A DNA stretch of 57,874 nucleotides from Octopus bimaculoides. Lineage: Eukaryota. This document shows positions 2,844 through 57,460 of this stretch, in pieces. Location of the stretch: contig NC_068988.1 of assembly GCF_001194135.2 (NCBI RefSeq), forward strand, positions 83,490,156-83,548,029, read 5' to 3'. The position numbers and the translations under genes were made by a program. The notes under the pieces were generated by a model. It searched no databases. It was not told the DNA's origin and saw only the letters and a program-made list of their open reading frames with translations. The stretch's first letter is position 1. Each line of letters opens with the position of its first letter.

Positions 2844-3233
2844 ATGGCTCTGGAGTGTCAAAACTTAATTTGTTGGGTGTCAGTACAAGAGATATCAGCC
2901 CTTGGTAATGTTGTAAAAAGTGTACAATACAAAAATACAACACTGTCTCTTGGACGTGATGAATACAATGAGGTTATTCTGAAGTTGTTTGCTGGCAAAC
3001 GAGATGTAACCTACATGTTGCGTAATATTCAAGTACATAAGAAGTTTTTTAAAGATGGCAAAGCCACCATTAAGATATTAGACCAAAGTCTTCAGCTGAT
3101 GCTATCTAACTGCCCTCCAGATAAACTTGTTCTCTTCCTTAAGACAATGATGACTAAATTAGAATGCAAGAAAAAAAGTGGTTTCATTAGCAATCGAGAA
3201 AAAATAAAGACTGGTCTTAAAAGATCTTTTCAG
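2844..3233 (+). CDS. PIF1: PIF1 helicase coding exon 1 (N-terminal PINT/PH-like domain)
   Basis: MALECQNL...KKFFKDGKATIKI...LSNCPPDKLVLFLKTM...RSFQ; acceptor before 2833, donor CAG|GTAAGA, phase 0. Confidence 0.9.
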
Positions 3234-3296: not shown

Positions 3297-3697
3297 GGTA
3301 TCTTTTACTTGTCTCATTAAGGTGTAGCCATGCTGGGGCACCACTATGAAAGGTTTTAGTTGAACAGTTCAACTGCAGGACTTATTTTTTTAGGCCTGGT
3401 ACTTATTGTATTGGTGTCTTTTGCTGAAGTGCTAAATTATAGGGATGCAAAGACACCTACACCAATTGTCAAGTGGTGGTGGGACACACACATGCACCCC
3501 CCCCCACACACACACTCTCTCTCTCTCTCTCTCTCATATACAACAAGCTTCTTTCAGTTTCTGTCTACCAAATCCACTTACAAGGCTTTGGTCAGCCCAA
3601 GGCTATAGTAGAAGACACTTGCCCAAGGTGCCATGCAGTGGGACTGAACCCAGAACCATGTGGTTGGGAAGCAAGCTTCTTATCACACAGCCATACC
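3297..3697 (-). mobile_element. SINE family A copy
   Basis: Reverse complement of the 57081-57460 element. Confidence 0.85.
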
Positions 3698-4684: not shown

Positions 4685-4863
4685 TGACACGTAAAAGCAC
4701 CTACTACACTCTCTGAGTGGTTGGCGTTAGGAAGGGCATCCAGCTGTAGAAACTCTGCCAAATTTAGATTGGAGCCTGGTGTTGCCATCCGGTTTCACCA
4801 GTCCTCAGTCAAATCGTCCAACCCATGCTAGCATGGAAAGCGGACGTTAAACGATGATGATGA
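4685..4863 (+). mobile_element. (GAT)n-tailed retroelement copy (family B, RTE 3' tail-related)
   Basis: AAAAGCACC...GGAAGGGCATCCAGCTGTAG...GGAAAGCGGACGTTAAACGATGATGA. Confidence 0.85.
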
Positions 4864-5146
4864 TAGAGATTTCATTTACTGCCCTAACACAACACTTCCA
4901 CATCACCTACATATCAGTAAAAGTACTAAGAAAGAAAGTGTTCTTGAATATGGAGTGACTCAATGTTTTGCTGCTGTAAATTCCATCTGATACAGTCTTT
5001 GCCACTACAAGCACAATCACAATCACCACCAAATCGCAGACATCTATAAAGCCATCATGAAATATTATTTTTTCCATTCACTCAAGACAAAACACAAAAA
5101 AATTAATATTTAATTAGGGTGTGTGTGTTTTTTTTTCTTTTTTTAG

Positions 5147-5402
5147 GAAATCAGTCCATTGACCCTAAAAGATTTGAAATTTGCAAAAGGTCTCCCTATT
5201 AATGACAATGACAAATGTTTAGATTCAACGCCAAAATCAAAGAGGCAACATTGTGAAAGTGATAAAGAAAACCAACCACAGATGAAGCAGTATAGAGAGA
5301 TCCAGCTTTCCAAGCAGAGAATATTACAGCCTTTTAAATTAACCAAAGAACAAAGGAAGGTTCTTGATATTGTTATTAATGGGGAGAATGTGTTCTTTAC
5401 TG
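5147..5402 (+). CDS. PIF1: PIF1 coding exon 2 (EISPLT...LTKEQRKVLDIVINGENVFFT-G)
   Basis: Polypyrimidine tract + AG at 5145-5146; Q-motif helix and NVFFTG strand preceding Walker A; end at 5402 inferred from phase-1 compatibility (weak donor GTAGTC). Confidence 0.85.
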
Positions 5403-5405
5403 GTA

Positions 5406-5550
5406 GTCTTCCAGGAAAAGCATCTCTAGCCAAGGTAAAATATTACCTTCATTGTAGACAAGTGAGGGCTGGCGAAGGGCATCCAGTTGTAAAAAATCTG
5501 CCTCCAACACATACAAGTATGGAAAAGTAGGCATTAAATGATGATGATGG
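5406..5550 (+). mobile_element. Degenerate (GAT)n-tailed retroelement at the PIF1 exon 2 donor
   Basis: AAATATTACCTT...GTGAGGGCTGGC...GGGCATCCAG...GGAAAAGT...AAATGATGATGA; related copies at ~5895, ~13915 and ~41455 (-). Confidence 0.75.
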
Positions 5551-6440
5551 TAACAGCATGTTAATGTCAGAGTGTGGTTAGTTTGCTTCCTAACCACATG
5601 GTTTCAGATTCAGTCCAACTGCTTGGCACCTTGGGCAAGTATCTTCTAGTATAACTTCAGGTTGGCAGCCAAAGCTTTGTAAGTGGATTTGGTAAACAAA
5701 AACTTCACATGTGTTCACTGGTTTGCAAACAATAGCCTTGTCAGCTTGCAATCCACCATGAAAACATGTCTGGGATTCTCAACATGTCTTGACAAGTTGC
5801 ATGATCTTTGCAAACAGAAAGCTCAGTCATACAGTGTTGTTTACTTCCAGTTCTCCAAGTAGATATTTCTAGGTTGTTTGTTCTTTGATGGATAAAAAGA
5901 TTATTACCTTACTTTGAAACAAGTGGAAGGTGGTGAAAAGATAAGCATCCAGCTGTAGAAATCTCTGCTCCAACATATTCTTGTTTGACTCACACAAGCA
6001 TGGAAAAGTAGATATTAAAACAATGGTGATGGTGGCAAAGTTTAAAATCCTGATATCTTTACTGCTCATAGTTTTTGAGTGATGGAGTAAAAGTAGAACC
6101 TGTCATTTTTGCTAAAGCCATGAAGACATTCAGTTGAGGAAGGTTTTATTTTGTGATATCTTTTCTATCAGTAATTATGGAAACTTCAAAAAAAAAAGTA
6201 AGCAAACTGCTTTTTCAGCCAAGCAGACTAAGCTAATTAGAAATAATAATGTATCTTTCCTAGAAGTAATGCCTATTACAGGATTCAAAACTTATGAACA
6301 TTAAATGATGATGATGAATCGTGTAGCAGCTATGAAGCATGTCAAATACTCAACACCTTTACAGTGGATATACCTGTTCTAGTTTTTTTGAGAATGTCCA
6401 CTTCTTTTAAGTAATTCTTTCACTGAGAATTGTTTACAGC

Positions 6441-7262
6441 TATTGTATTGAGTCAGAAGTTTTGTAATATTTTGGTAACCTATTTTCTTTATTTGTCAAG
6501 TTACAACAAAAACAGCCTAATATTCAAAATAGAGGCCATCATGTTACACTGTCAGACAGTGCAACACAATGACCTTACTTTTCTGCCAGTTGTTTGATCC
6601 CATACTGATACCTGTTCTTGTCCTTCATGGTGAAGAACTCTTTCACATGAGCACTGGAAACAAACAGTGGTTAAGCAAGGGCCAGCTTCCAGAACGTGTC
6701 ACTAAACACTGGCGTTTTGAAGGCAAGGTGATGCATTGCATCTGGGGGAATTATGAGGGGATAATTCACTACGAATTTGTTCCGGATTGCTGAACCATCA
6801 ATGCCAACCTGTACTCTGAACAGCTGGAGTGGATATGTGCCATTGTGTGGCAAAAATACCTGGCATTGGTTCACTGAAAGTGAGCTCTTTTGTAGCAAGA
6901 CAATGCAAGACCTCCGGATGACCCAGAATAAACTCCAGGAACTTGATAGAATTGAACTGATGCCACACCCAGCATATAGTCCAGATCTAGCTCCCTCGGA
7001 TTATTACTTGTTCCAATTCATGGCTCATTTCCTGCACTCACAGTGCAGGAGGTGGAAGCTTCAGTGAAGGAGTTCTTTGCCTTGAAGGACAAGAGCTGGT
7101 ACCAATGTGGGATCAAAGAACTGGCAGAAAGATGGCTTCAGACGGTGCAACACAATGGCCTCTACTTTGAATATTAGGTTGCTTGTGTTGTAACTTCACA
7201 AATAAAGTAAAAATAGTTACCAATGTATTGTCAAAAAATGTAATTATTTCCTGAGTCCCAAT
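6441..7262 (+). mobile_element. Degenerate mariner (Tc1/mariner) transposon derivative
   Basis: Frameshifted transposase pieces: GKVMHCIW, QDNARP, HPAYSPDLAPSDYYLF, GIKELAERW; ends approximate. Confidence 0.9.
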
Positions 7263-8064
7263 GCTTAAACGAAATGTAAACCAATACTAAACCTGCTCCC
7301 TGTTGACTATGTTCTGTGAGGAAAATGTGTGGGTACACAGTAGATTTTAAAATTTTAAAATAAAACTTGTCAAAGGTGGATGAACTGTTTAAGAGTCAAT
7401 GACACCCATATTGTAGGGAGGAGACGGGTACCACTAAGTTTAGTAAACTCAATGACATATTTGAATGGAGGTTATAACAATATTTAATTCCATACTAGAT
7501 TGGTTAGGGCTTGCAAAGCCCCAGACTAAAAAGAGTGGGAAAGATTGGTAAATAAAACTCAAGTGTCTCAATAGCTGAGATGGGAACAATATGACTTGTC
7601 TTGACTTAATTCAAGGTTCTTATTGAACTTCTTAACAACTAGACTCCTCCATCAGAACATGTGGACTATGTGAGTGTGTGTGAGAGGGAAGTTGTCAAGG
7701 TTCCTCTAGACATCTTTAATATATGGGCTCATCCATTAGAACATGTAAACATGTAGATTACATGGATATACATGAGTGTGTGCTTAGTTTAAGATTCTTT
7801 GAGATATCTTTAACACTGGATTCTTTCATTAGAATTTTGTATGTGTGTGTGTGTGCTTGTGCTTGTTTTGAAATTTCTCTTGCTCACACACTATCCAACA
7901 ATTGAAGTATAGAAACACCAACTACAACACACTTAGTCATCTCTGAACCAAATTCTTTTACTCATGTCTCTGAAGAGAAACTGTTCTTTTTCACATGCAA
8001 CAATAAAATGAAAGTATAAAAAGGAAAAACCTGCTGAATAAACAAACATTGCCTTACATTGTAG

Positions 8065-8154
8065 GTGCTCTGCCCCCAGATCACACATTTGCCACAGCAA
8101 GCACAGGTGTAGCTGCCTGCTATATAGGTGGAATTACTCTCCATGCCTTTGCTG
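8065..8154 (+). CDS. PIF1: PIF1 coding exon (G-ALPPDHTFATASTGVAACYIGGITLHAFA-G; motifs Ia/Ib)
   Basis: TGTAG| acceptor, G|GTAAAG donor, 90 nt, phase 1-1; not shown in ORF track, translated by hand. Confidence 0.93.
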
Positions 8155-9703: not shown

Positions 9704-10605
9704 TTTGACCTTAACCAGCAGTTCATGACCTAAGGTCAATGAGCTGTGTTCAAAATTTTAAAAGGCTGCAGTGTATTAAATATATAATTTTTCAAGCAGG
9801 GCTCTAAGTAGTTAAGAAGTTTGCTCCGTAACCACATGGTTCCAGGTTCAGTCTCATTGCTTGGCACCTTGGGCAAGTGTTTTCTACTATTGCCCCAGAC
9901 TGACCAAAGCCTTAGGAGTGGATTTGGTAGATGGAAACTGAAAGAAGCTCATCAAGTGTATGTATGTATATGTGCATATGCATACATATATATGACAGAA
10001 TTAGCAGTTTTAAAATATTACTGCTTTTGCTGTTCAGGATGTCCATAAATTACCTTTACAATTTGAAGTGTAAAAGTTGTAAAGGTAATTCATGGATACT
10101 CTATATTATAGTTATCAAAAGGGTTTTGGATTAGTAGAATTGGTAGAGCAGCTGACAAAATGCCAAATGAGGTTTAGTTATGTAAAGATATATCTCTTTA
10201 TGTTCTGAGTTCAATTCCTGTTAGGGTTAAGTTTGACTATGATTCTTCCAGTGTTGATAAAATAAACCCTTGTTACATACTAAGTGTCAGTATAACCAAC
10301 CATGCCTATCTCTGAAACTTGTATCCGTGTATGTTAGAAATCCTTATTATCAAATTGAGTATTGAAAGTTCAGCTCTGTAGAGAAAAACCCATTCAAGAA
10401 CAGAAATCATTTACATCCTCCTCCTTTCTCTCAAATGTGTGGTTTTCAGCCAAAGTCAAATATGGTTTTTTTTTTCCTCATTATTGAATACCACAAAATG
10501 CCATCAAAAACTTTTCTGAATCCTTTCATGATTCTCCACCACACCTCTATACTCAAATGAGCAATAACAACATACTGTTTTTCATGTTTATCTTTCTGTT
10601 TATAG

Positions 10606-10759
10606 GAATTGGTTCTGGAAATGGTCCATTGGAACAATGTGTGCAACTAGCAAACAGACCATCTGTCAAACAGAACTGGATGAAATGTCATCATTTGATA
10701 ATTGATGAAGTATCCATGGTACACAGAGATTACTTTGATAAATTAGAAGCAATAGCTCG
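10606..10759 (+). CDS. PIF1: PIF1 coding exon (IGSG...LIIDEVSMV...KLEAIAR; Walker B)
   Basis: TATAG| acceptor, CG|GTGAGG donor, IIDEVSM motif II. Confidence 0.95.
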
Positions 10760-11249: not shown

Positions 11250-11615
11250 ATCAGGGCATCTCATAACCCTCCCAGGAATAGTGGGCAGAGAAGATTAATG
11301 CATATATATAAAAGTACTCGGCCAAAAGTAAGCCATTGTACTTAGCCTTCATCGACCTGGAGAAAGCTTTCAACAGAGTTCTCTGCTCTGTTATATGGTG
11401 GTCTCTAAGGAAGTTAGGAGTAGAGGAGTGGCTTGTTAGATTTGTACAAGCCATGTACAGTGGTGCTGTCACTAAGGTGAGAGTCATCCATGAATACAGT
11501 GATGAATTTAGTGTACAGGTAGGGGTTCACCAGGGCTTAGTTCTCAGCCCACTTGTATTCATTATAGTCCTCCAGGTCATAACAGAGGAATTCAAAACTG
11601 GGTGCCCATGTATTT
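11250..11615 (+). mobile_element. RTE-type LINE reverse transcriptase fragment
   Basis: LYLAFIDLEKAFNRV...GVHQGLVLSPLVFII. Confidence 0.9.
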
Positions 11616-11698
11616 TCTGTCTCTACCCGTTTGAAAATACTTTGATGTTTATATCAGAATATATTGTTAAAATGTGATTCTTTACTCCTCCATTGCAG

Positions 11699-11813
11699 GT
11701 TAATTCGCAGAAATGACAAACCATTTGGTGGCATTCAAGTCATTGTCTGTGGAGATTTCTTGCAGTTGCCTCCTGTTACCAAGAAAGCCGATAAAAAGAA
11801 ATTTTGCTTCCAG
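11699..11813 (+). CDS. PIF1: PIF1 coding exon (PFGGIQVIVCGDFLQLPPV; motif III)
   Basis: TGCAG| acceptor, CAG|GT donor, GDFLQLPPV signature. Confidence 0.95.
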
Positions 11814-12749: not shown

Positions 12750-13031
12750 GTACATCGTTGCCAGTGCCACTGGACTGGCTCCTGTGCAGGTGGCACGTAA
12801 AAAACACCATTTTGAACGTGGCCATTGCCAATACCGTGAGACTGGCCCTCGTGCCGGTGGCACGTAAAAGCACCCACTACACTCTCGGAGTGGTTGGCGT
12901 TAGGGAGAGCATCCAACTGTAGAAGCTCTGCCAGATCAGATTGGAGCCTGGTGTAGCCATCCGGTTCACCAGTCCTCAGTCAAATCGTCCAACCTATGCT
13001 AGCATGGAAAGCGGACGTTAAACGATGATGA
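12750..13031 (+). mobile_element. Family B copy
   Basis: Same consensus as 4685-4863 with longer 5' part. Confidence 0.85.
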
Positions 13032-13674
13032 TATACATACATATATATATATATATATACACACATACACATATATACATATACATCATTATCATCATCG
13101 TTTAATGTCTGCTTTCCATGCTAATTTTTACCAAGTAGTTCGGTATGTAAAAAACCATTATCGGTAAAGAACTTATATAAAAAGTTCTTTTAAAAATTAT
13201 TAATTATTAATTTATTAATAAATTAATAATCCTTTACCCTATATCTGTAATGATTATTCACTCCCTGATAGTAAACCGTAGATTTTCTGCGGTATTGCTT
13301 GTGACGCACATGGTGATTCTTGAGGATGGATATGGACTGACTCGTATATATAAATTCGGAAATGCTGCTTTTCTTATGTGATGCACGATGTTGCCTGGTT
13401 GAGCATACATGGTTTTTGCCAGCATTTTCAAATTTATAACCTAGAATATCATACTGATGACGGAAATGAATTTTTTCACTATTCTGATCCAGAAACGCGT
13501 CTATGATTGACTAAGACTGGTTAGTTTCGATATTTTTTCTTCTTGCTTTGCCTTTGTGAGTTACAAGTATTGCTATCTGCTGGAGATTTATTTTAGTAGT
13601 AGAATTAGCATTTTAACTGCTATTTCTAAATTTCGGTATGAAGCAACTGTTGCTGATCCCTTAATTATGTGTAT

Positions 13675-14531: not shown

Positions 14532-14638
14532 TCACCTGCCTGGCGGAAATGTATCAACGTTAATCTAGAACTCACAGAAATCAAACGACAAGATGATCCA
14601 AAATTTATTGACATTCTTCAGAATATCAGGAAAGGATT
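14532..14638 (+). CDS. PIF1: PIF1 coding exon (SPAWRKC...LTEIKRQDDPKFIDILQNIRKG; motif IV)
   Basis: CCCAG| acceptor, TT|GTAAGT donor, phase 0-2. Confidence 0.95.
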
Positions 14639-15924: not shown

Positions 15925-16450
15925 GCACAGGTGTGGCTGTGTGGTAAGAAGCTTGCTTCGCAACCACATGATTCTGTGTTCAGTCCCACTACATGACATC
16001 TTGGGCAAATGTCTTTTACTGTAGCCTTGGGCTGATCAATGCTTTGTGACTGAATTTGGTAGCTGGAAACTGAAAGAAGCCTGTTGTATATATGTGTGTG
16101 TGTATATATATATTTATCATCAGCTATACAAACTCACAAGTCTTCGACCTGCAACTAGTTTGATAAGTGCCAACGCATGAAACTTTCAGGCCTTGAGTCA
16201 TTCTGTTACTTCTGCTAAATATTAATAAAAATGTGTGTGTGTGTGTGTGTGTGCCTGTGTTTGTTTCATTACCACCCTGCTTGGCAACCGGAGGTGGTGT
16301 GTTTACATCCCTTTAACTTAGTGGGGATGTAAGCATGTGTAATTGACCTCAGGCTTAAAGGAATAAGTCCTGGGGTCGATTTATTTGACTAAAACCCTTC
16401 AGAGCTGTGTCCCAGCATGACTGCAGTCAAATGACTGAAACAAGAAAAAG
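15925..16450 (+). mobile_element. SINE family A copy
   Basis: Head and tail match 57081-57460. Confidence 0.85.
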
Positions 16451-16562: not shown

Positions 16563-16702
16563 GTGCCCTGGGTATGTCAATGATGCTCTTCAGAACACAG
16601 TGAATTCTCACAGTCAGCAAAATGGTATCGAAGCCACTCGGCTGTGTACCCATAAAGATGATGTCAACTACATCAATTTGAATCATCTTGCTAAGCTGAA
16701 AG
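16563..16702 (+). CDS. PIF1: PIF1 coding exon (CPGYV...ATRLCTHKDDVNYINLNHLAKLK-G; PIF1 signature region)
   Basis: AACAG| acceptor, AAG|GTAAGA donor, phase 2-1. Confidence 0.93.
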
Positions 16703-17001
16703 GTAAGATTTTATTTTTTCACACACATGTATGAATATATGCATGTAAGCATCTACATACACATACATTTAGATGTATATATGTAAGTATGTAAATCATG
16801 CATGCATGCACACATGTATGAATACACACATGTAAGCATCTACATACACATTTGGATGTATATATGTAAGTATGAAAAGATGTGGGAGTTCATATCTTTA
16901 AACATCTACACATTTATGAGTGCATACATGTAGCTAAATACATGCATGCACATATATTAGTGGTTGCACACGAGTATATAAACACACATGTGTAAGTGTG
17001 T

Positions 17002-17210
17002 ATCATCATCATCATCGTCATTTAACGTCCGCTTTCCATGCTAGCACGGGTTGGACGATTTGACTGAGGACTGGTGGACCAGGAGGCGACACCAGGCTCC
17101 AATCTGATTTGGCAGAGTTTCTACAGCTGGATGCCCTTCCTAACGCCACCCACTCCGAGAGTGTAGTGGGTGCTTTTACGTGCCACCGGCACGAGGGCCA
17201 GTCAGACGGG
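17002..17210 (-). mobile_element. Family B copy (left arm of inverted pair)
   Basis: (CAT)n CGTCATTTAACGTCCGCTTTCCATGCTAGC... Confidence 0.9.
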
Positions 17211-17268: not shown

Positions 17269-17444
17269 AAAAGCACCCACTACACTCTCTGAGTGGTTGG
17301 CGTTAGGAAGGGCATCCAGCTGTAGAAACTCTGCCAAATTAGATTGGAGCCTGGTGTTGCAATCCGGTTTCACCAGTCCTCAGTCAAATCGTCCAACCCA
17401 TGCTAGCATGGAAAGCGGACGTTAAACGATGATGATGATGATGA

Positions 17445-23008: not shown

Positions 23009-23109
23009 GAGATTGCCATGTGTTTACAGCAACGTGTAACAGTGAATATGTGTCTGAAGGTGACCACTGTCCAGTGGAGCCAAAACTGAAGCTTAAAATT
23101 GGAACACAG
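23009..23109 (+). CDS. PIF1: PIF1 coding exon (DCHVFTAT...CPVEPKLKLKIGTQ)
   Basis: TTTCAG| acceptor, CAG|GTAAGA donor, phase 1-0, LKLKIGTQ matches LxLKxGAQ. Confidence 0.92.
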
Positions 23110-24622: not shown

Positions 24623-24710
24623 GTGATGTTGACAAAGAACTTGGATCTCCAACGAGGTCTTGTGAATGGTGCAAGAGGTGTAGTGTGTAGCTTTGATAAA
24701 GGAAATGAAG
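24623..24710 (+). CDS. PIF1: PIF1 coding exon (VMLTKNLDLQRGLVNGARGVVCSFDKGNE-G)
   Basis: ATTAG| acceptor, AAG|GTAACT donor, GLVNGARGVV signature. Confidence 0.95.
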
Positions 24711-25598: not shown

Positions 25599-25741
25599 GA
25601 TGGCCCCATGTAAAATTCCTGTCTGGAACAGTGGAATGTGTCAGACCATTACGATGGGTTATCAAGTCCAGTTCAATAGTGACTGTATGGAAGCAACTAC
25701 CTCTAAAACTAGCCTGGGCTATTTCTATACATAAAAGTCAG
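25599..25741 (+). CDS. PIF1: PIF1 coding exon (WPHVKF...QLPLKLAWAISIHKSQ; motif V)
   Basis: CACAG| acceptor, CAG|GT donor, QLPLKLAWAISIHKSQ. Confidence 0.95.
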
Positions 25742-27212
25742 GTTTGTAACTTCTATTTTTTGCTTATACTCTTTTTCTTTTCTCCACATATTTTCCATTA
25801 TTATATTATGAGTGGTGCAAGTTTGGTTTCAAAATTTTGTTCTTGTAGCTGGGATTTGTTCTTATTACCCTTCTTGATAATCCCTCAGGTATGAAGTTGT
25901 CAAACCTGATTTTTATCAGCCAGTAATACTAGAACCAAAGTTTCATACCTTGCTGTATAGTTTTTTTTTCCTTGTTTTTTTTTTTTTTTATAGCTTAATC
26001 AGAAAGTGGGCAGTCCCTCTAATCCTTAAGGGTTTCTGAGGCTAGTGTCAGGGACAAAGAGGAAGGTAACCTCAAACCAGTGGCCTGGCCTATATTCTTT
26101 TGCTTGCAACAGAATTTTTATTTAACCTCTTTTCTTATATTTATTGCATTTGTTTCAATCATTTTTGAAAATAATGATGAATTTCGTAAAATAACTTTTT
26201 CATTATTGAGTTGATCTTTATAGAATATATTAACATGAGAGTTTGATAGATTTTAATTTAGATCACTTAAAAAAAAGCAAGTTTTTATTATAGAACCAGA
26301 GAGTCTTGGGTAGGTTGGTGTCAAAAGAGTTAACTTTTAGGGATCTAAATAGTCACTCTATACACACATACACATAAATATTGTCCTGCTTCCTCAAAAC
26401 ATATCTGGTCCCTGAATGCCTTTAGTGTGGGATCCACTCAAGAACCAGGTGGTCAAATAGTGGTGTTAAATCAACCACCCAATATAGGCCACAATGAGAT
26501 TTGAACTTGGACTAAATACCCCAAGGCATCCCATTTAACACTAATAATTCCTCTTGCTCACCACTGTAACCTAGTAAGTTATTTATCAACTCAGAGAAAA
26601 ATCAAAGACCTCATCAGGATTCGAAATCATAACAGAAGTTGAAATACTCCAATGCCCTAACAACTCTGCCAATTTGTCAAATGTGAACTCGTGTCCAAAT
26701 TGTACAATGAACCACCAAAAGTGAATCTGAAGAGTTGATAGTTCAATACCAATCATCAACGGCGTTGTTTCACTTTGTTGATTATCTGTTAAATGAAGGA
26801 GAAATATTTCTAGATATGAACATCAGCTATGGGCAAAATAAGGAGTCCCTGATGAACTAACAGCCTGACCCACAGTGTATATACTCCTATTCAAATATAT
26901 ATCTCAGAAAAGTGCACAGATATTTGTAGTAAAAGGCAGCTCTGATAAGAGCATTTGGCAACTACTATTGAGCAAGAAAAGCCTTCAAGTCCTTGGCTCC
27001 CAAGGAAAGCATCAAACCTGTTGACTATGGGAGCCCTTTATGCAGTTGCTCAATCTACTAGAAATAACCAAAATTTCTCAAATCATCCTCACACCCTACT
27101 GTGTTAAGATTAGCTATTTTAGTTCTACAATAACTAATGTTAAAACAGTAGGCTCTTCACATTCTAGATTCAAATCTTGCTGAAGTTAGCTTTGCTTTTC
27201 ATTTCTCTATCA

Positions 27213-28104: not shown

Positions 28105-28320
28105 GGTATGACACTTGATTTTGTGGAAATTTCTTTGTCGCGGGTCTTTGAAGCTGGTCAAGCATACGTTGCCCTGTCTCGAGCTAAATCATTGAAAGGT
28201 TTACGAGTTCTTGACTTTGATCATTCATGTGTTCGTGCTGATCCTGATGTTTTAAATTTTTACAACCGTTTAAAGATCAGCCACCCAACTGAACAAATGT
28301 CTTCAGACAATTTCAGTTAG
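28105..28320 (+). CDS. PIF1: PIF1 last coding exon (GMTLD...[10 protein letters not shown]...; motif VI) to stop
   Basis: TTTCAG| acceptor, [10 protein letters not shown] motif VI, TAG 28318-28320. Confidence 0.95.
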
Positions 28321-35405: not shown

Positions 35406-35918
35406 TCGATACTTCTGCATGTCAACTTATTGTCCAGTTGGCAAACTGTCTGCACATGATCAATTAGAAGCCATTAGCATTATCAACAATTCCAGTTTAG
35501 GAAAGTAAGNNNNNNNNNNNNNNNNNNNNNNNNNNNNNNNNNNNNNNNNNNNNNNNNNNNNNNNNNNNNNNNNNNNNNNNNNNNNNNNNNNNNNNNNNNN
35601 NNNNNNNNNNNNNNNNNNNNNNNNNNNNNNNNNNNNNNNNNNNNNNNNNNNNNNNNNNNNNNNNNNNNNNNNNNNNNNNNNNNNNNNNNNNNNNNNNNNN
35701 NNNNNNNNNNNNNNNNNNNNNNNNNNNNNNNNNNNNNNNNNNNNNNNNNNNNNNNNATTATTATACAGTGACTATTTTAAAAACTGTCAAAATAAAACAT
35801 TGATAGTTTAGGATTCAGGTTTATTAAACAGACTCAAACTTATCCCATTCTTCATTAAATTTTCAGCTTTCTGCTAAAACACACATACCTACTTATATAT
35901 AAGCTTCACAAGAGATGA
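35406..35918. repeat. Copy 2 of the ~480-bp duplication (middle is an N gap)
   Basis: Both gap flanks match 33325-33428 and 33642-33803. Confidence 0.9.
35510..35756. other. Assembly gap (247 N)
   Basis: Run of N. Confidence 1.
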
Positions 35919-41338: not shown

Positions 41339-41353
41339 NNNNNNNNNNNNNNN
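41339..41353. other. Assembly gap next to poly-G
   Basis: Run of N. Confidence 1.
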
Positions 41354-45329: not shown

Positions 45330-45339
45330 NNNNNNNNNN
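45330..45339. other. Assembly gap within poly-A
   Basis: Run of N. Confidence 1.
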
Positions 45340-57080: not shown

Positions 57081-57460
57081 GGTGTGGCTGTGTGGTAAGT
57101 AACTTGCTTACCAACCACATGATTCCGGGTTCATTCCCACTACGTGGCACCTTGGGCAGGTGTCTTCTACTTTAGCCTCGGGACGACCAAAGCCTTGTGA
57201 GTGGATTTGGTAGTCGGAAACTGAAAGAAGCCCGTCGTACATATGTATATATACGTATGTGTGTGTATACGTGTTTGTCCCCCCAACATTGCTTGACAAC
57301 CGACGGTGGTGTTTACATCCCCGTAACCTAGCGGTTCGGCAAAATAAACCAATAGAATAAGTACTAGGATTCCAAAGAATAACTTCTAAGGTCGATTTGC
57401 TCGACTAAAGGCGGTGCTCCAGCATGGCCGCAGTCAAATGACTCAAACAAGTAAGAGAGA
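57081..57460 (+). mobile_element. Young full-length tRNA-derived SINE (family A)
   Basis: GGTGTGGCTGTGTGGTAAG head, GGCACCTTGGGCA core, (TA)/(TG) spacer, GACTCAAACAAGTAAGAG tail, CpGs intact. Confidence 0.9.

Follow-up and report, generated by a model that had tools for sequence, protein, structure and literature searches.

Results

The analysed stretch of DNA, a window of 57,874 bases, corresponds to Octopus bimaculoides chromosome CM046608.1 (GCA_001194135.2), with 0 mismatches across the 31,320 bases compared. It harbors a PIF1 orthologue at positions 2844 to 28320, whose 11 exons were threaded and which is represented by the public models XP_014774888.1 (RefSeq) and A0A0L8H7K1 (UniProt). 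All features named below lie on the forward strand, and slashes mark exon borders. Exon 1 (2844-3233, donor CAG/GTAAGA) encodes the N-terminal PH_LRR1-type domain (PF25344, E = 5e-17). The kept part of the ancestral exon 2, delimited by blastn to O. vulgaris, spans 5147-5407 and ends in NVFFTGS. Exon 3 (8065-8154) reads (G)ALPPDHTFATASTGVAACYIGGITLHAFAG, holds motif Ia, is of phase 1 at both ends and comprises 90 nt in O. vulgaris and Argonauta as well. Exons 4-11, placed by threading at 10606-10759, 11699-11813, 14532-14638, 16563-16702, 23009-23109, 24623-24710, 25599-25741 and 28105-28320, carry motif II (DEVSM), the signature PFGGIQ, the 2B domain and motifs IV-VI, all intact. Exon 2 aside, all ten remaining exons have open frames; of the ten introns, nine are of the ordinary GT-AG type, and no other stops or broken splice sites were found.

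Human PIF1 matched the gene with E = 3e-142, while its translation shares about 94% identity with O. vulgaris PIF1. Pfam detected the domains PH_LRR1, PIF1 and Pif1_2B_dom; in the RefSeq model the PIF1-like helicase domain (PF05970) scored 157.5 bits against a cut-off of 25.9, and the 2B, SH3-like domain (PF21530) reached 48.9 bits. Motif II (LIIDEVSMV) and the Pif1 signature DKPFGGIQVIVCGDFLQLPPV (PFGGIQ..GDFLQLPPV type) are both present and aligned with invariant columns, and the alignment to human 6HPT runs without break up to residue 416, on the side of the 2B domain and motifs IV-VI. Orthology is supported by a collinear blastn chain with O. vulgaris over exons, introns and flanks, and the lengths of exons 3-11 are the same in O. 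bimaculoides, O. vulgaris and Argonauta hians. This is an ordinary PIF1 orthologue, present in O. bimaculoides as a single copy. With canonical metazoan PIF1, an SF1B 5'-3' DNA helicase (human 6HPT, 6HPH and 5FHH; O. vulgaris CAI9726716.1; O. sinensis XP_029640114.1), it has in common the orthologous locus, the 11-exon structure, the PH_LRR1-type N-terminal domain, the PIF1 domain, the signature motif, 2B and motifs Ia to VI. In contrast to these proteins, it does not encode the 15 residues SAGTGKSFLLRRIIG, made up of the P-loop and the beginning of helix alpha1, and the native donor of exon 2 is lost. Two further Pfam families, AAA_30 and AAA_19, stayed under their cut-offs.

A preliminary description of this DNA had stated that the window lacks a Walker A motif and that intron 2 contains no assembly gap. 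Both statements held: GxxxxGK[ST] gave 0 matches in the six frames of the window, and its N runs are found only at 35510-35756, 41339-41353 and 45330-45339, thus all outside 5403-8064. Likewise, the reported in-frame junction with a loss of about 15 residues could be reproduced, as the join of 5402 to 8065 reads NVFFTG/ALPPDHTFATASTG and, aligned to human PIF1 6HPT, is short of exactly 15 residues (sagtgksyllkrilg).

Comparison with other cephalopods, proposed in the same description, changed the picture of what is missing. The motif is kept in O. vulgaris and Argonauta, but as the end of exon 2 and not as an exon of its own. In O. vulgaris (4753-5053, L002) and A. hians (2164-2467) the 3' end of exon 2 itself encodes Walker A and reads FFTGSAGTGKSFLLRRII-G/gtaagt, also given as GSAGTGKSFLLRRII G/gtaagt. 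In both species the exon extends 45 nt past the equivalent of position 5402, encoding SAGTGKSFLLRRII-G up to the donor TTG/GTAAGT. Consequently, neither the exon end assigned to 5402 nor the proposed loss of a separate, symmetric Walker A exon of phase 1-1 could be upheld, since in these two octopods the motif occupies the last 45 nt of exon 2.

Compared to O. vulgaris, the assembled O. bimaculoides sequence lacks 439 bp across the boundary of exon 2 and intron 2. Of exon 2, the final 40 nt are gone (AGTGKSFLLRRII-G), which encode the Walker A lysine and the following helix; beyond them, the lost segment takes in the native donor, a pair of dispersed repeats and some 40 nt of unique intron. 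By blastn, window positions 4863-5407 correspond to L002 4469-5013 (93%) and 5403-5882 to L002 5448-5975. The overlap at 5403-5407, defined by alignment with O. vulgaris, is the deletion junction: a 5-nt microhomology, GTAGT, which O. vulgaris has at either breakpoint (L002 5009-5013 and 5448-5452) and whose GT is at the same time the cryptic donor 5402/5403. When the O. vulgaris sequence of the lost part was compared with the window, the match was limited to 23 nt ending at 5407, and neither the motif scan nor a query with the O. vulgaris exon end found the lost end of exon 2 elsewhere in the window.

Dispersed repeat makes up about 80% of the lost segment and starts 8 nt past the exon end; repeat A has at least 6 and repeat B at least 10 copies in the window. 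One breakpoint precedes repeat A by 49 nt and the other follows repeat B by about 40 nt, so that both fall into unique sequence. This is not a repeat-collapse pattern. Indels of 100-3000 bp relative to O. vulgaris are common, with at least 14 counted across the compared region, and only the PIF1 deletion touches an exon. A direct repeat around the intron (ccttcattgtag / ccttacattgtag) was considered as a sign of insertion and rejected, as both copies are found at the orthologous places in O. vulgaris.

The preliminary description was right that the other motifs are intact and free of stops; its clean splice sites do not extend to position 5402. With a rough donor matrix, this donor (CTG/GTAGTC) scored -1.04 bits, while the nine other donors of the gene ranged from 1.6 to 7.05. 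The join to 8065 owes its frame solely to a coincidence of phase between the lost donor and a weak cryptic GT within codon Gly216. Two cryptic donors further downstream, one at 5434 (distance 32 nt) and one at 5461 (59 nt), are stronger than 5402, but use of either shifts the frame and brings a stop in exon 3. The former (AAG/GTAAAA, phase 0) scored 3.36 bits and, joined to 8065, reads SLAKVLCPQITHLPQQAQV followed by a stop. The preliminary description had missed that the exon 2 frame remains open beyond 5402, as SLPGKASLAK, up to this better donor, which both public models use.

These two models cover the same locus, lack Walker A likewise and both read the 5408-5434 stretch as SLPGKASLAK. 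In XP_014774888.1 (613 aa) the lesion is bridged by a non-canonical GT..CT intron (5435-8054), so that the last 10 nt of intron 2 (8055-8064) are taken as coding (YIV + G); the same sequence is intronic in O. vulgaris, where RRIIG resides in exon 2. In A0A0L8H7K1 (654 aa), as its threading revealed, the frame is restored by a cryptic exon at 6590-6722 (acceptor ctgccag/, GC donor AAG/GCAAGG) within a relic of a mariner transposase, recognized as Pfam Transposase_1 over 6533-6790 (E = 1e-8). Since a GT..CT intron and a transposon-derived exon were needed to keep the frame, the junctions probably had no clean transcript support. No orthologue supports either of these models or the 5402/8065 join of the preliminary description.

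Two stretches resemble a decayed P-loop and were rejected as such. GSLPGKASLAK (5402-5434) is from 5408 onward the counterpart of O. vulgaris intron sequence (L002 5453 onward), which reads SLPGKHL and a stop there; the in-frame LPGKASLAK at 5408-5434 is thus intron-derived (orthologous to L002 5453-5480), and it resembles a P-loop only by chance. The second stretch, RKNLLNKQTLPYIVG directly 5' of 8065, read as P-loop or helix, is a conserved intron 3' end that is near-identical in O. vulgaris, a species with RRIIG in its exon 2.

The overall dN/dS relative to O. vulgaris amounts to 0.29, that of the helicase part to 0.23, and dS to 0.085. Argonauta served as outgroup at a saturated dS of about 1.2, so the branch analysis is restricted to dN lengths and parsimony counts: 9 amino acid changes fall on the O. 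bimaculoides branch versus 14 on that of O. vulgaris, all at variable positions, and the dN branch lengths are 0.0107 and 0.0138, respectively. As the rest of the gene is constrained and the other ATPase motifs are not relaxed, the lesion therefore appears to be recent. A processed or decaying pseudogene was ruled out, given one lesion, the retention of all introns, the dN/dS of 0.29 and no excess on the branch. A Helitron Rep/Hel or transposon-borne Pif1-like helicase was ruled out as well by the 11 exons, the PH_LRR1-type N-terminus and the single locus syntenic with O. vulgaris.

None of ten candidate ORFs and transcripts, among them minus-strand junction ORFs and the 599-aa deleted and 614-aa repaired proteins, had an exact match, but control ORFs of exons 1 and 11 had none either, so that this outcome carries no weight. 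Searching by similarity with the ORF of exon 2 gave 0 matches, too. A short first homology query delivered 2 matches, and a search of a representative library delivered 6 weak matches to distant proteins.

Discussion

By analogy with ScPif1-K264A, DNA-dependent ATPase and 5'-3' unwinding are expected to be absent in any product of the assembled allele. The claim that the Walker A lysine is essential is borne out by yeast, as ScPif1-K264A is null in all tested in vivo functions (PMC6144861), and the assembled O. bimaculoides allele likewise lacks this invariant lysine. While S. cerevisiae pif1-K264A changes a single residue, the octopus allele is without the entire loop and helix and also without the splice donor, and a frame shift is predicted for most of its transcripts. 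If donor 5402 were used, the protein would be short by 15 residues, would lack the P-loop and its helix and would be catalytically dead. Transcripts spliced via 5434 or 5461 would run into the stop in exon 3, and nonsense-mediated decay would be expected. The assembled allele would thus be a loss-of-function allele. In our interpretation, it represents neither a novel type of helicase nor an enzyme that evolved to work without a P-loop.

Three readings of the locus had been offered at the outset. Mis-assembly and haplotype deletion are both still live, while an in-frame ATPase-dead PIF1 is the least supported of them, as the other motifs are not relaxed. The junction itself rests on one assembly. 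We give about an even chance to a deletion allele that is real and perhaps confined to one haplotype. In the most likely scenario, the junction would be present in the DNA of the sequenced animal and would have arisen by a young microhomology-mediated deletion. Its appearance is that of microhomology-flanked deletions (alt-EJ, replication slippage), with a 5-nt identity at both breakpoints of which one copy is kept, unique DNA around each breakpoint and a length of a few hundred bp. Compared to such deletions, or to heterozygous structural variants fixed into haploid drafts, the mechanism is here deduced from the junction alone. A short-read de Bruijn assembler would favor the deleted haplotype, because the intact path crosses two repeats; we presume such behavior of an assembler that we take to be of the Meraculous type. 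Two general observations speak against a real deletion. A segment that turns into dispersed repeat so shortly after the exon is a typical place for short-read assembly to fail. Moreover, exon loss in a conserved gene is rare a priori under purifying selection, while artefacts are blind to function.

That exon 2, Walker A and the native donor are intact in the animal, that about 440 bp were lost during contig joining or gap closure and that PIF1 is normal, is a serious possibility which falls somewhat short of probable. The base-level sequence of the assembly derives from the 2015 short-read shotgun draft, and version 2 is a Hi-C re-scaffolding only (PMC9068888). Furthermore, the lost piece is mostly dispersed repeat beginning 8 nt past the exon end, the rest of the gene is conserved and constrained as in a working gene, the motif is found in all other animals sampled, three further octopods among them, and the RefSeq and JGI/UniProt models kept the frame only by means of the GT..CT intron or the transposon-derived exon. 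However, both breakpoints are unique and have just 5 nt in common, repeats A and B are members of distinct families, which makes a collapse between them unexpected, and no N run or other scar is near. Closures by k-mers or read walks require identity well beyond 5 nt, and contigs normally run into a repeat and do not stop 49 nt short of it.

A real deletion might also be fixed or frequent in the species. This would amount to a recent loss of active PIF1, with either no protein or a P-loop-less protein from the weak in-frame splice, and we consider it improbable. We strongly doubt that the species as a whole possesses a functional in-frame P-loop-less PIF1, made by splicing 5402 to 8065 or according to one of the frame-restoring models and acting as DNA or G-quadruplex binder, strand annealer or scaffold. 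The frame of the join and the integrity of all other motifs and domains fit this idea, as does the finding that Pif1 strand annealing is independent of ATP hydrolysis (PMC6144861). PIF1 loss is also tolerated in mice, as knockouts were reported viable (Snow 2007, Bannwarth 2016, as cited in bioRxiv 10.64898/2026.08.31.748286). However, the 5402 donor is the weakest of the gene and competes with the stronger out-of-frame donors downstream, no in vivo role is known for an ATP-independent activity of Pif1 (PMC6144861), and the alignment to 6HPT suggests that not the lysine alone but the beta1-P-loop-alpha1 connectivity of the RecA core would be lost. If the ATPase had long been dispensable, motifs II, III, V and VI should be relaxed, while the O. 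bimaculoides branch carries the fewer changes. Refuted by these comparisons is a separate Walker A exon missed in 5403-8064 or in the window, or surviving there as decayed remains (SLPGKAS and KNLLNK..YIVG): reading through exon 2 does give GSLPGKASLAK, reading through 5' of 8065 gives ..LPYIVG, and both public models take the SLPGKAS and YIVG stretches as coding, but both are orthologous to O. vulgaris intron with the motif in exon 2 there, GxxxxGK[ST] occurs in no frame of the window, and the O. vulgaris exon-end sequence is unmatched past 5407.

Taken together, the PIF1 records XP_014774888.1 and A0A0L8H7K1 are defective and patched by homology, and the O. bimaculoides reference is defective likewise. 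They are not usable as proof of a P-loop-less PIF1 and require a warning when employed in alignments or selection scans. If the deletion allele is real, a laboratory cephalopod would carry a naturally occurring null or helicase-dead version of a conserved gene for genome stability, albeit one of modest interest, since mouse knockouts are viable. Although the evidence is not in favor of fixation, a deletion fixed in the species would bear on the dispensability of PIF1 in animals, and, if truly fixed or of high frequency, it would make O. bimaculoides the first animal known to live without a PIF1 motor in nature.

Results

The window is identical to chromosome CM046608.1 of Octopus bimaculoides GCA_001194135.2 over 31,320 compared bases (0 mismatches). 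Version 2 of this assembly combines the earlier published shotgun draft with Hi-C (PMC9068888), and consequently its base-level sequence is that of a short-read assembly. The PIF1 gene occupies 2844-28320 on the + strand. Its top database match is XP_014774888.1, 'ATP-dependent DNA helicase PIF1 [Octopus bimaculoides]', followed by PIF1 of O. vulgaris and O. sinensis (~94% identity), of Argonauta hians (79%) and of other molluscs. In tests for a canonical PIF1 orthologue the locus behaved as one in every respect except Walker A, and when checked as a possible decayed pseudogene or transposon-borne Pif1-like gene it was negative for both. The gene spans 25.5 kb, compared to 20.7 kb in O. vulgaris, where a peroxiredoxin gene (AhpC-TSA / 1-cysPrx_C) follows downstream (26034-26681, - strand, of the O. 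vulgaris locus, L002).

The absence of Walker A is real in the assembled sequence. A six-frame scan of the whole 57,874-nt window for GxxxxGK[ST] gave no match, and runs of N occur only at 35510-35756 (247 bases), 41339-41353 (15) and 45330-45339 (10), far from the PIF1 lesion and outside 5403-8064. These three runs, 3' of the gene, are scaffold gaps of the draft assembly. Near 37.3 kb and 42.0 kb lie long repeats of (GA)n type, translating as RERERE. Joining 5402 to 8065 yields, in frame, ...NVFFTG followed directly by ALPPDHTFATASTG..., and the product aligns to human PIF1 (crystal structure 6HPT) along the entire helicase core (E = 3e-142), interrupted by a single gap, sagtgksyllkrilg, of exactly 15 residues. 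All remaining PIF1 motifs were found, and the other exons are open. The preliminary description thus holds on all of these points. In the RefSeq model, Pfam still detected PIF1, PH_LRR1 and Pif1_2B_dom, while AAA_30 and AAA_19 were under the cut-offs that both exceed in O. vulgaris.

Threading the PIF1 proteins of O. vulgaris and Argonauta hians onto their own locus DNA (L002 and L003) resulted in 11 exons in all three species, O. bimaculoides included. Exons 3 to 11 have the same lengths in the three octopods, while exon 2 measures 301 nt (O. vulgaris) or 304 nt (Argonauta). In O. vulgaris it ends with ...TTTACTGGTAGTGCTGGAACTGGTAAATCTTTTCTTCTTCGTAGAATTATTG/gtaagt, encoding ...FFTGSAGTGKSFLLRRII-G in phase 1; Argonauta ends on identical residues with synonymous DNA differences. 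Thus the octopod Walker A forms the 3' end of exon 2 and not, as previously assumed, a separate exon. Nor is 5402 the clean exon boundary it was taken for, since native exon 2 runs further and the GT at this point lies within codon Gly216. In exon 5 (L002 11263-11377), Cys at residue 328 (O. bimaculoides numbering) is retained in O. bimaculoides.

Breakpoints were mapped by blastn and base-level alignments against L002. Window 4863-5407 aligns with L002 4469-5013, and window 5403-5882 with L002 5448-5975, so that O. bimaculoides lacks 439 bp of O. vulgaris sequence (L002 5014-5452). O. vulgaris has GTAGT at each of the two breakpoints (L002 5009-5013; L002 5448-5452), and the window has it a single time (5403-5407). 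The absent segment takes in the final 40 nt of exon 2 together with its native donor, dispersed repeat A (L002 5063-5216), a family with at least 6 copies in the window, dispersed repeat B (L002 5249-5409), with at least 10, and ~40 nt of intron that is unique. As the left breakpoint lies 49 nt 5' of repeat A and the right one ~40 nt 3' of repeat B, both fall in unique sequence. The coding part is present in Argonauta and in every other animal sampled, which makes this a loss in O. bimaculoides and not an insertion in O. vulgaris. Both repeats are short SINE-like families (~150 nt, 71-88% identity) with many copies in and around PIF1, for example at window 4715-4864, 12887-13032, 16992-17156 and 17291-17443 (A) and 3538-3681, 5580-5704, 9814-9970, 15946-16095 and 57097-57254 (B); one copy of each is within the missing segment.

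Between O. bimaculoides and O. vulgaris PIF1, dS is 0.085 and dN/dS 0.29 overall and 0.23 in the helicase part; dS to Argonauta was saturated and left out. With Argonauta and a decapodiform transcript used for polarisation, the O. bimaculoides branch carries 9 amino-acid changes (dN 0.0107) and that of O. vulgaris 14 (dN 0.0138), all at variable positions. The 1.8 kb PIF1 coding sequence contains no second disabling lesion, and no relaxed constraint was seen on the other ATPase motifs. Therefore, the Walker A loss is either recent on the scale of the lineage split, said to be ~34 million years ago, or absent from the animals. Window 1-31500 differs from L002 by 14 or more indels (100-3300 bp), several with junction overlaps of 3-11 nt, and most resemble transposon insertions. 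A non-LTR retrotransposon reverse-transcriptase fragment in intron 4 (11312-11674, + strand; Pfam RVT_1, E = 2e-10) lies within a 528-bp stretch missing from O. vulgaris.

Splicing and public gene models

Donor scores come from a rough position weight matrix based on the literature, and all values are approximate. The donor at 5402 (CTG/GTAGTC, phase 1, in frame) reached -1.04 bits, the lowest score of any donor of the gene on this matrix, compared to 1.6 to 7.05 bits for the nine other PIF1 donors and 4.98 bits for the lost native donor (TTG/GTAAGT, phase 1, in O. vulgaris). The splice sites had been called clean, which is correct for the other introns, all GT-AG, but not for 5402. Its join to 8065 is in frame only because the GT within Gly216 has the phase of the lost donor. 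The reading frame runs on past 5402 as GSLPGKASLAK, a read-through previously overlooked, to a better-looking donor at 5434 (AAG/GTAAAA, 3.36 bits, phase 0, out of frame), whose splice to 8065 gives ...SLAKVLCPQITHLPQQAQV and a stop within exon 3. Further donors lie at 5461 (CAA/GTGAGG, 3.98 bits, phase 0, out of frame) and 5516 (CAA/GTATGG, 1.13 bits, phase 1), the latter weak and in frame but expected to insert 38 junk residues. Most transcripts of the assembled allele are thus predicted to be frame-shifted.

Both public models include the 5402-5434 stretch. XP_014774888.1 reads ...GSLPGKASLAK/YIVGALPP; it takes the last 10 nt of intron 2 (YIV plus G) as coding and needs an intron, 5435-8054, with non-canonical GT..CT ends, which appears to be homology-forced. 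A0A0L8H7K1 (654 aa) proceeds from 5434 through an extra exon (6590-6722) with a GC donor to 8065. This exon sits within a mariner-type transposase relic in intron 2 (6533-7174, + strand; Pfam Transposase_1, E = 1e-8) that carries stops and frameshifts and has an orthologous copy in O. vulgaris. We considered SLPGKAS as a decayed P-loop and ..LPYIVG, 5' of 8065, as a decayed helix. However, sequence from 5408 onward is orthologous to the O. vulgaris intron, which reads SLPGKHL and a stop in the same frame, and that intron closes with almost the same bases as those directly preceding 8065. Consequently, both resemblances are due to chance, and each public model is a patch driven by homology.

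Discussion

From the sequence comparison, we give about an even chance to a real young deletion allele, possibly of one haplotype. Breakpoints in unique DNA with 5-nt microhomology are the signature of an end-joining or slippage deletion rather than of a repeat collapse. Repeats A and B come from different families, and indels of 100-3000 bp between the two species are common at this locus. Moreover, k-mer assemblers faced with a heterozygous deletion would favour the deleted path, because the intact one crosses two repeats. The same junction and the two unrelated families speak against an assembly artefact, in which the Walker A segment would be missing from the draft only. We nevertheless regard such an artefact as a serious, if not the favoured, possibility: the bases derive from a short-read draft, the absent piece is 80% repeat, beginning 8 nt past the exon end, the rest of the gene is perfectly constrained, and conserved genes are a priori rarely hit by true exon deletions. 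The exon 2 ORF had no match in a similarity search, an exact look-up of ten candidate ORFs or transcripts found none in the collection (controls likewise none), and a representative search matched distant proteins only.

A P-loop-less PIF1 maintained by selection is improbable. Yeast pif1-K264A acts as a null, the Walker A lysine being needed for all tested in vivo functions (PMC6144861), and any product of the assembled allele would lack this lysine, the whole loop and the next helix of the RecA core (6HPT alignment). Judged from this, any such product would be inactive as a motor. That a Walker A exon was overlooked is barely credible beside the empty six-frame scan.

PIF1 knockout mice are reported, as cited in a preprint, to be viable with mild mitochondrial myopathy (bioRxiv 10.64898/2026.08.31.748286); on that report, a null allele, even homozygous, would not be implausible. 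Taken together, the locus is an ordinary PIF1 gene, affected either by one young lesion or by a fault of the assembly, and no new kind of system. Either way it is papered over by public annotation, and the practical outcome is a warning on two database protein records, XP_014774888.1 and A0A0L8H7K1.
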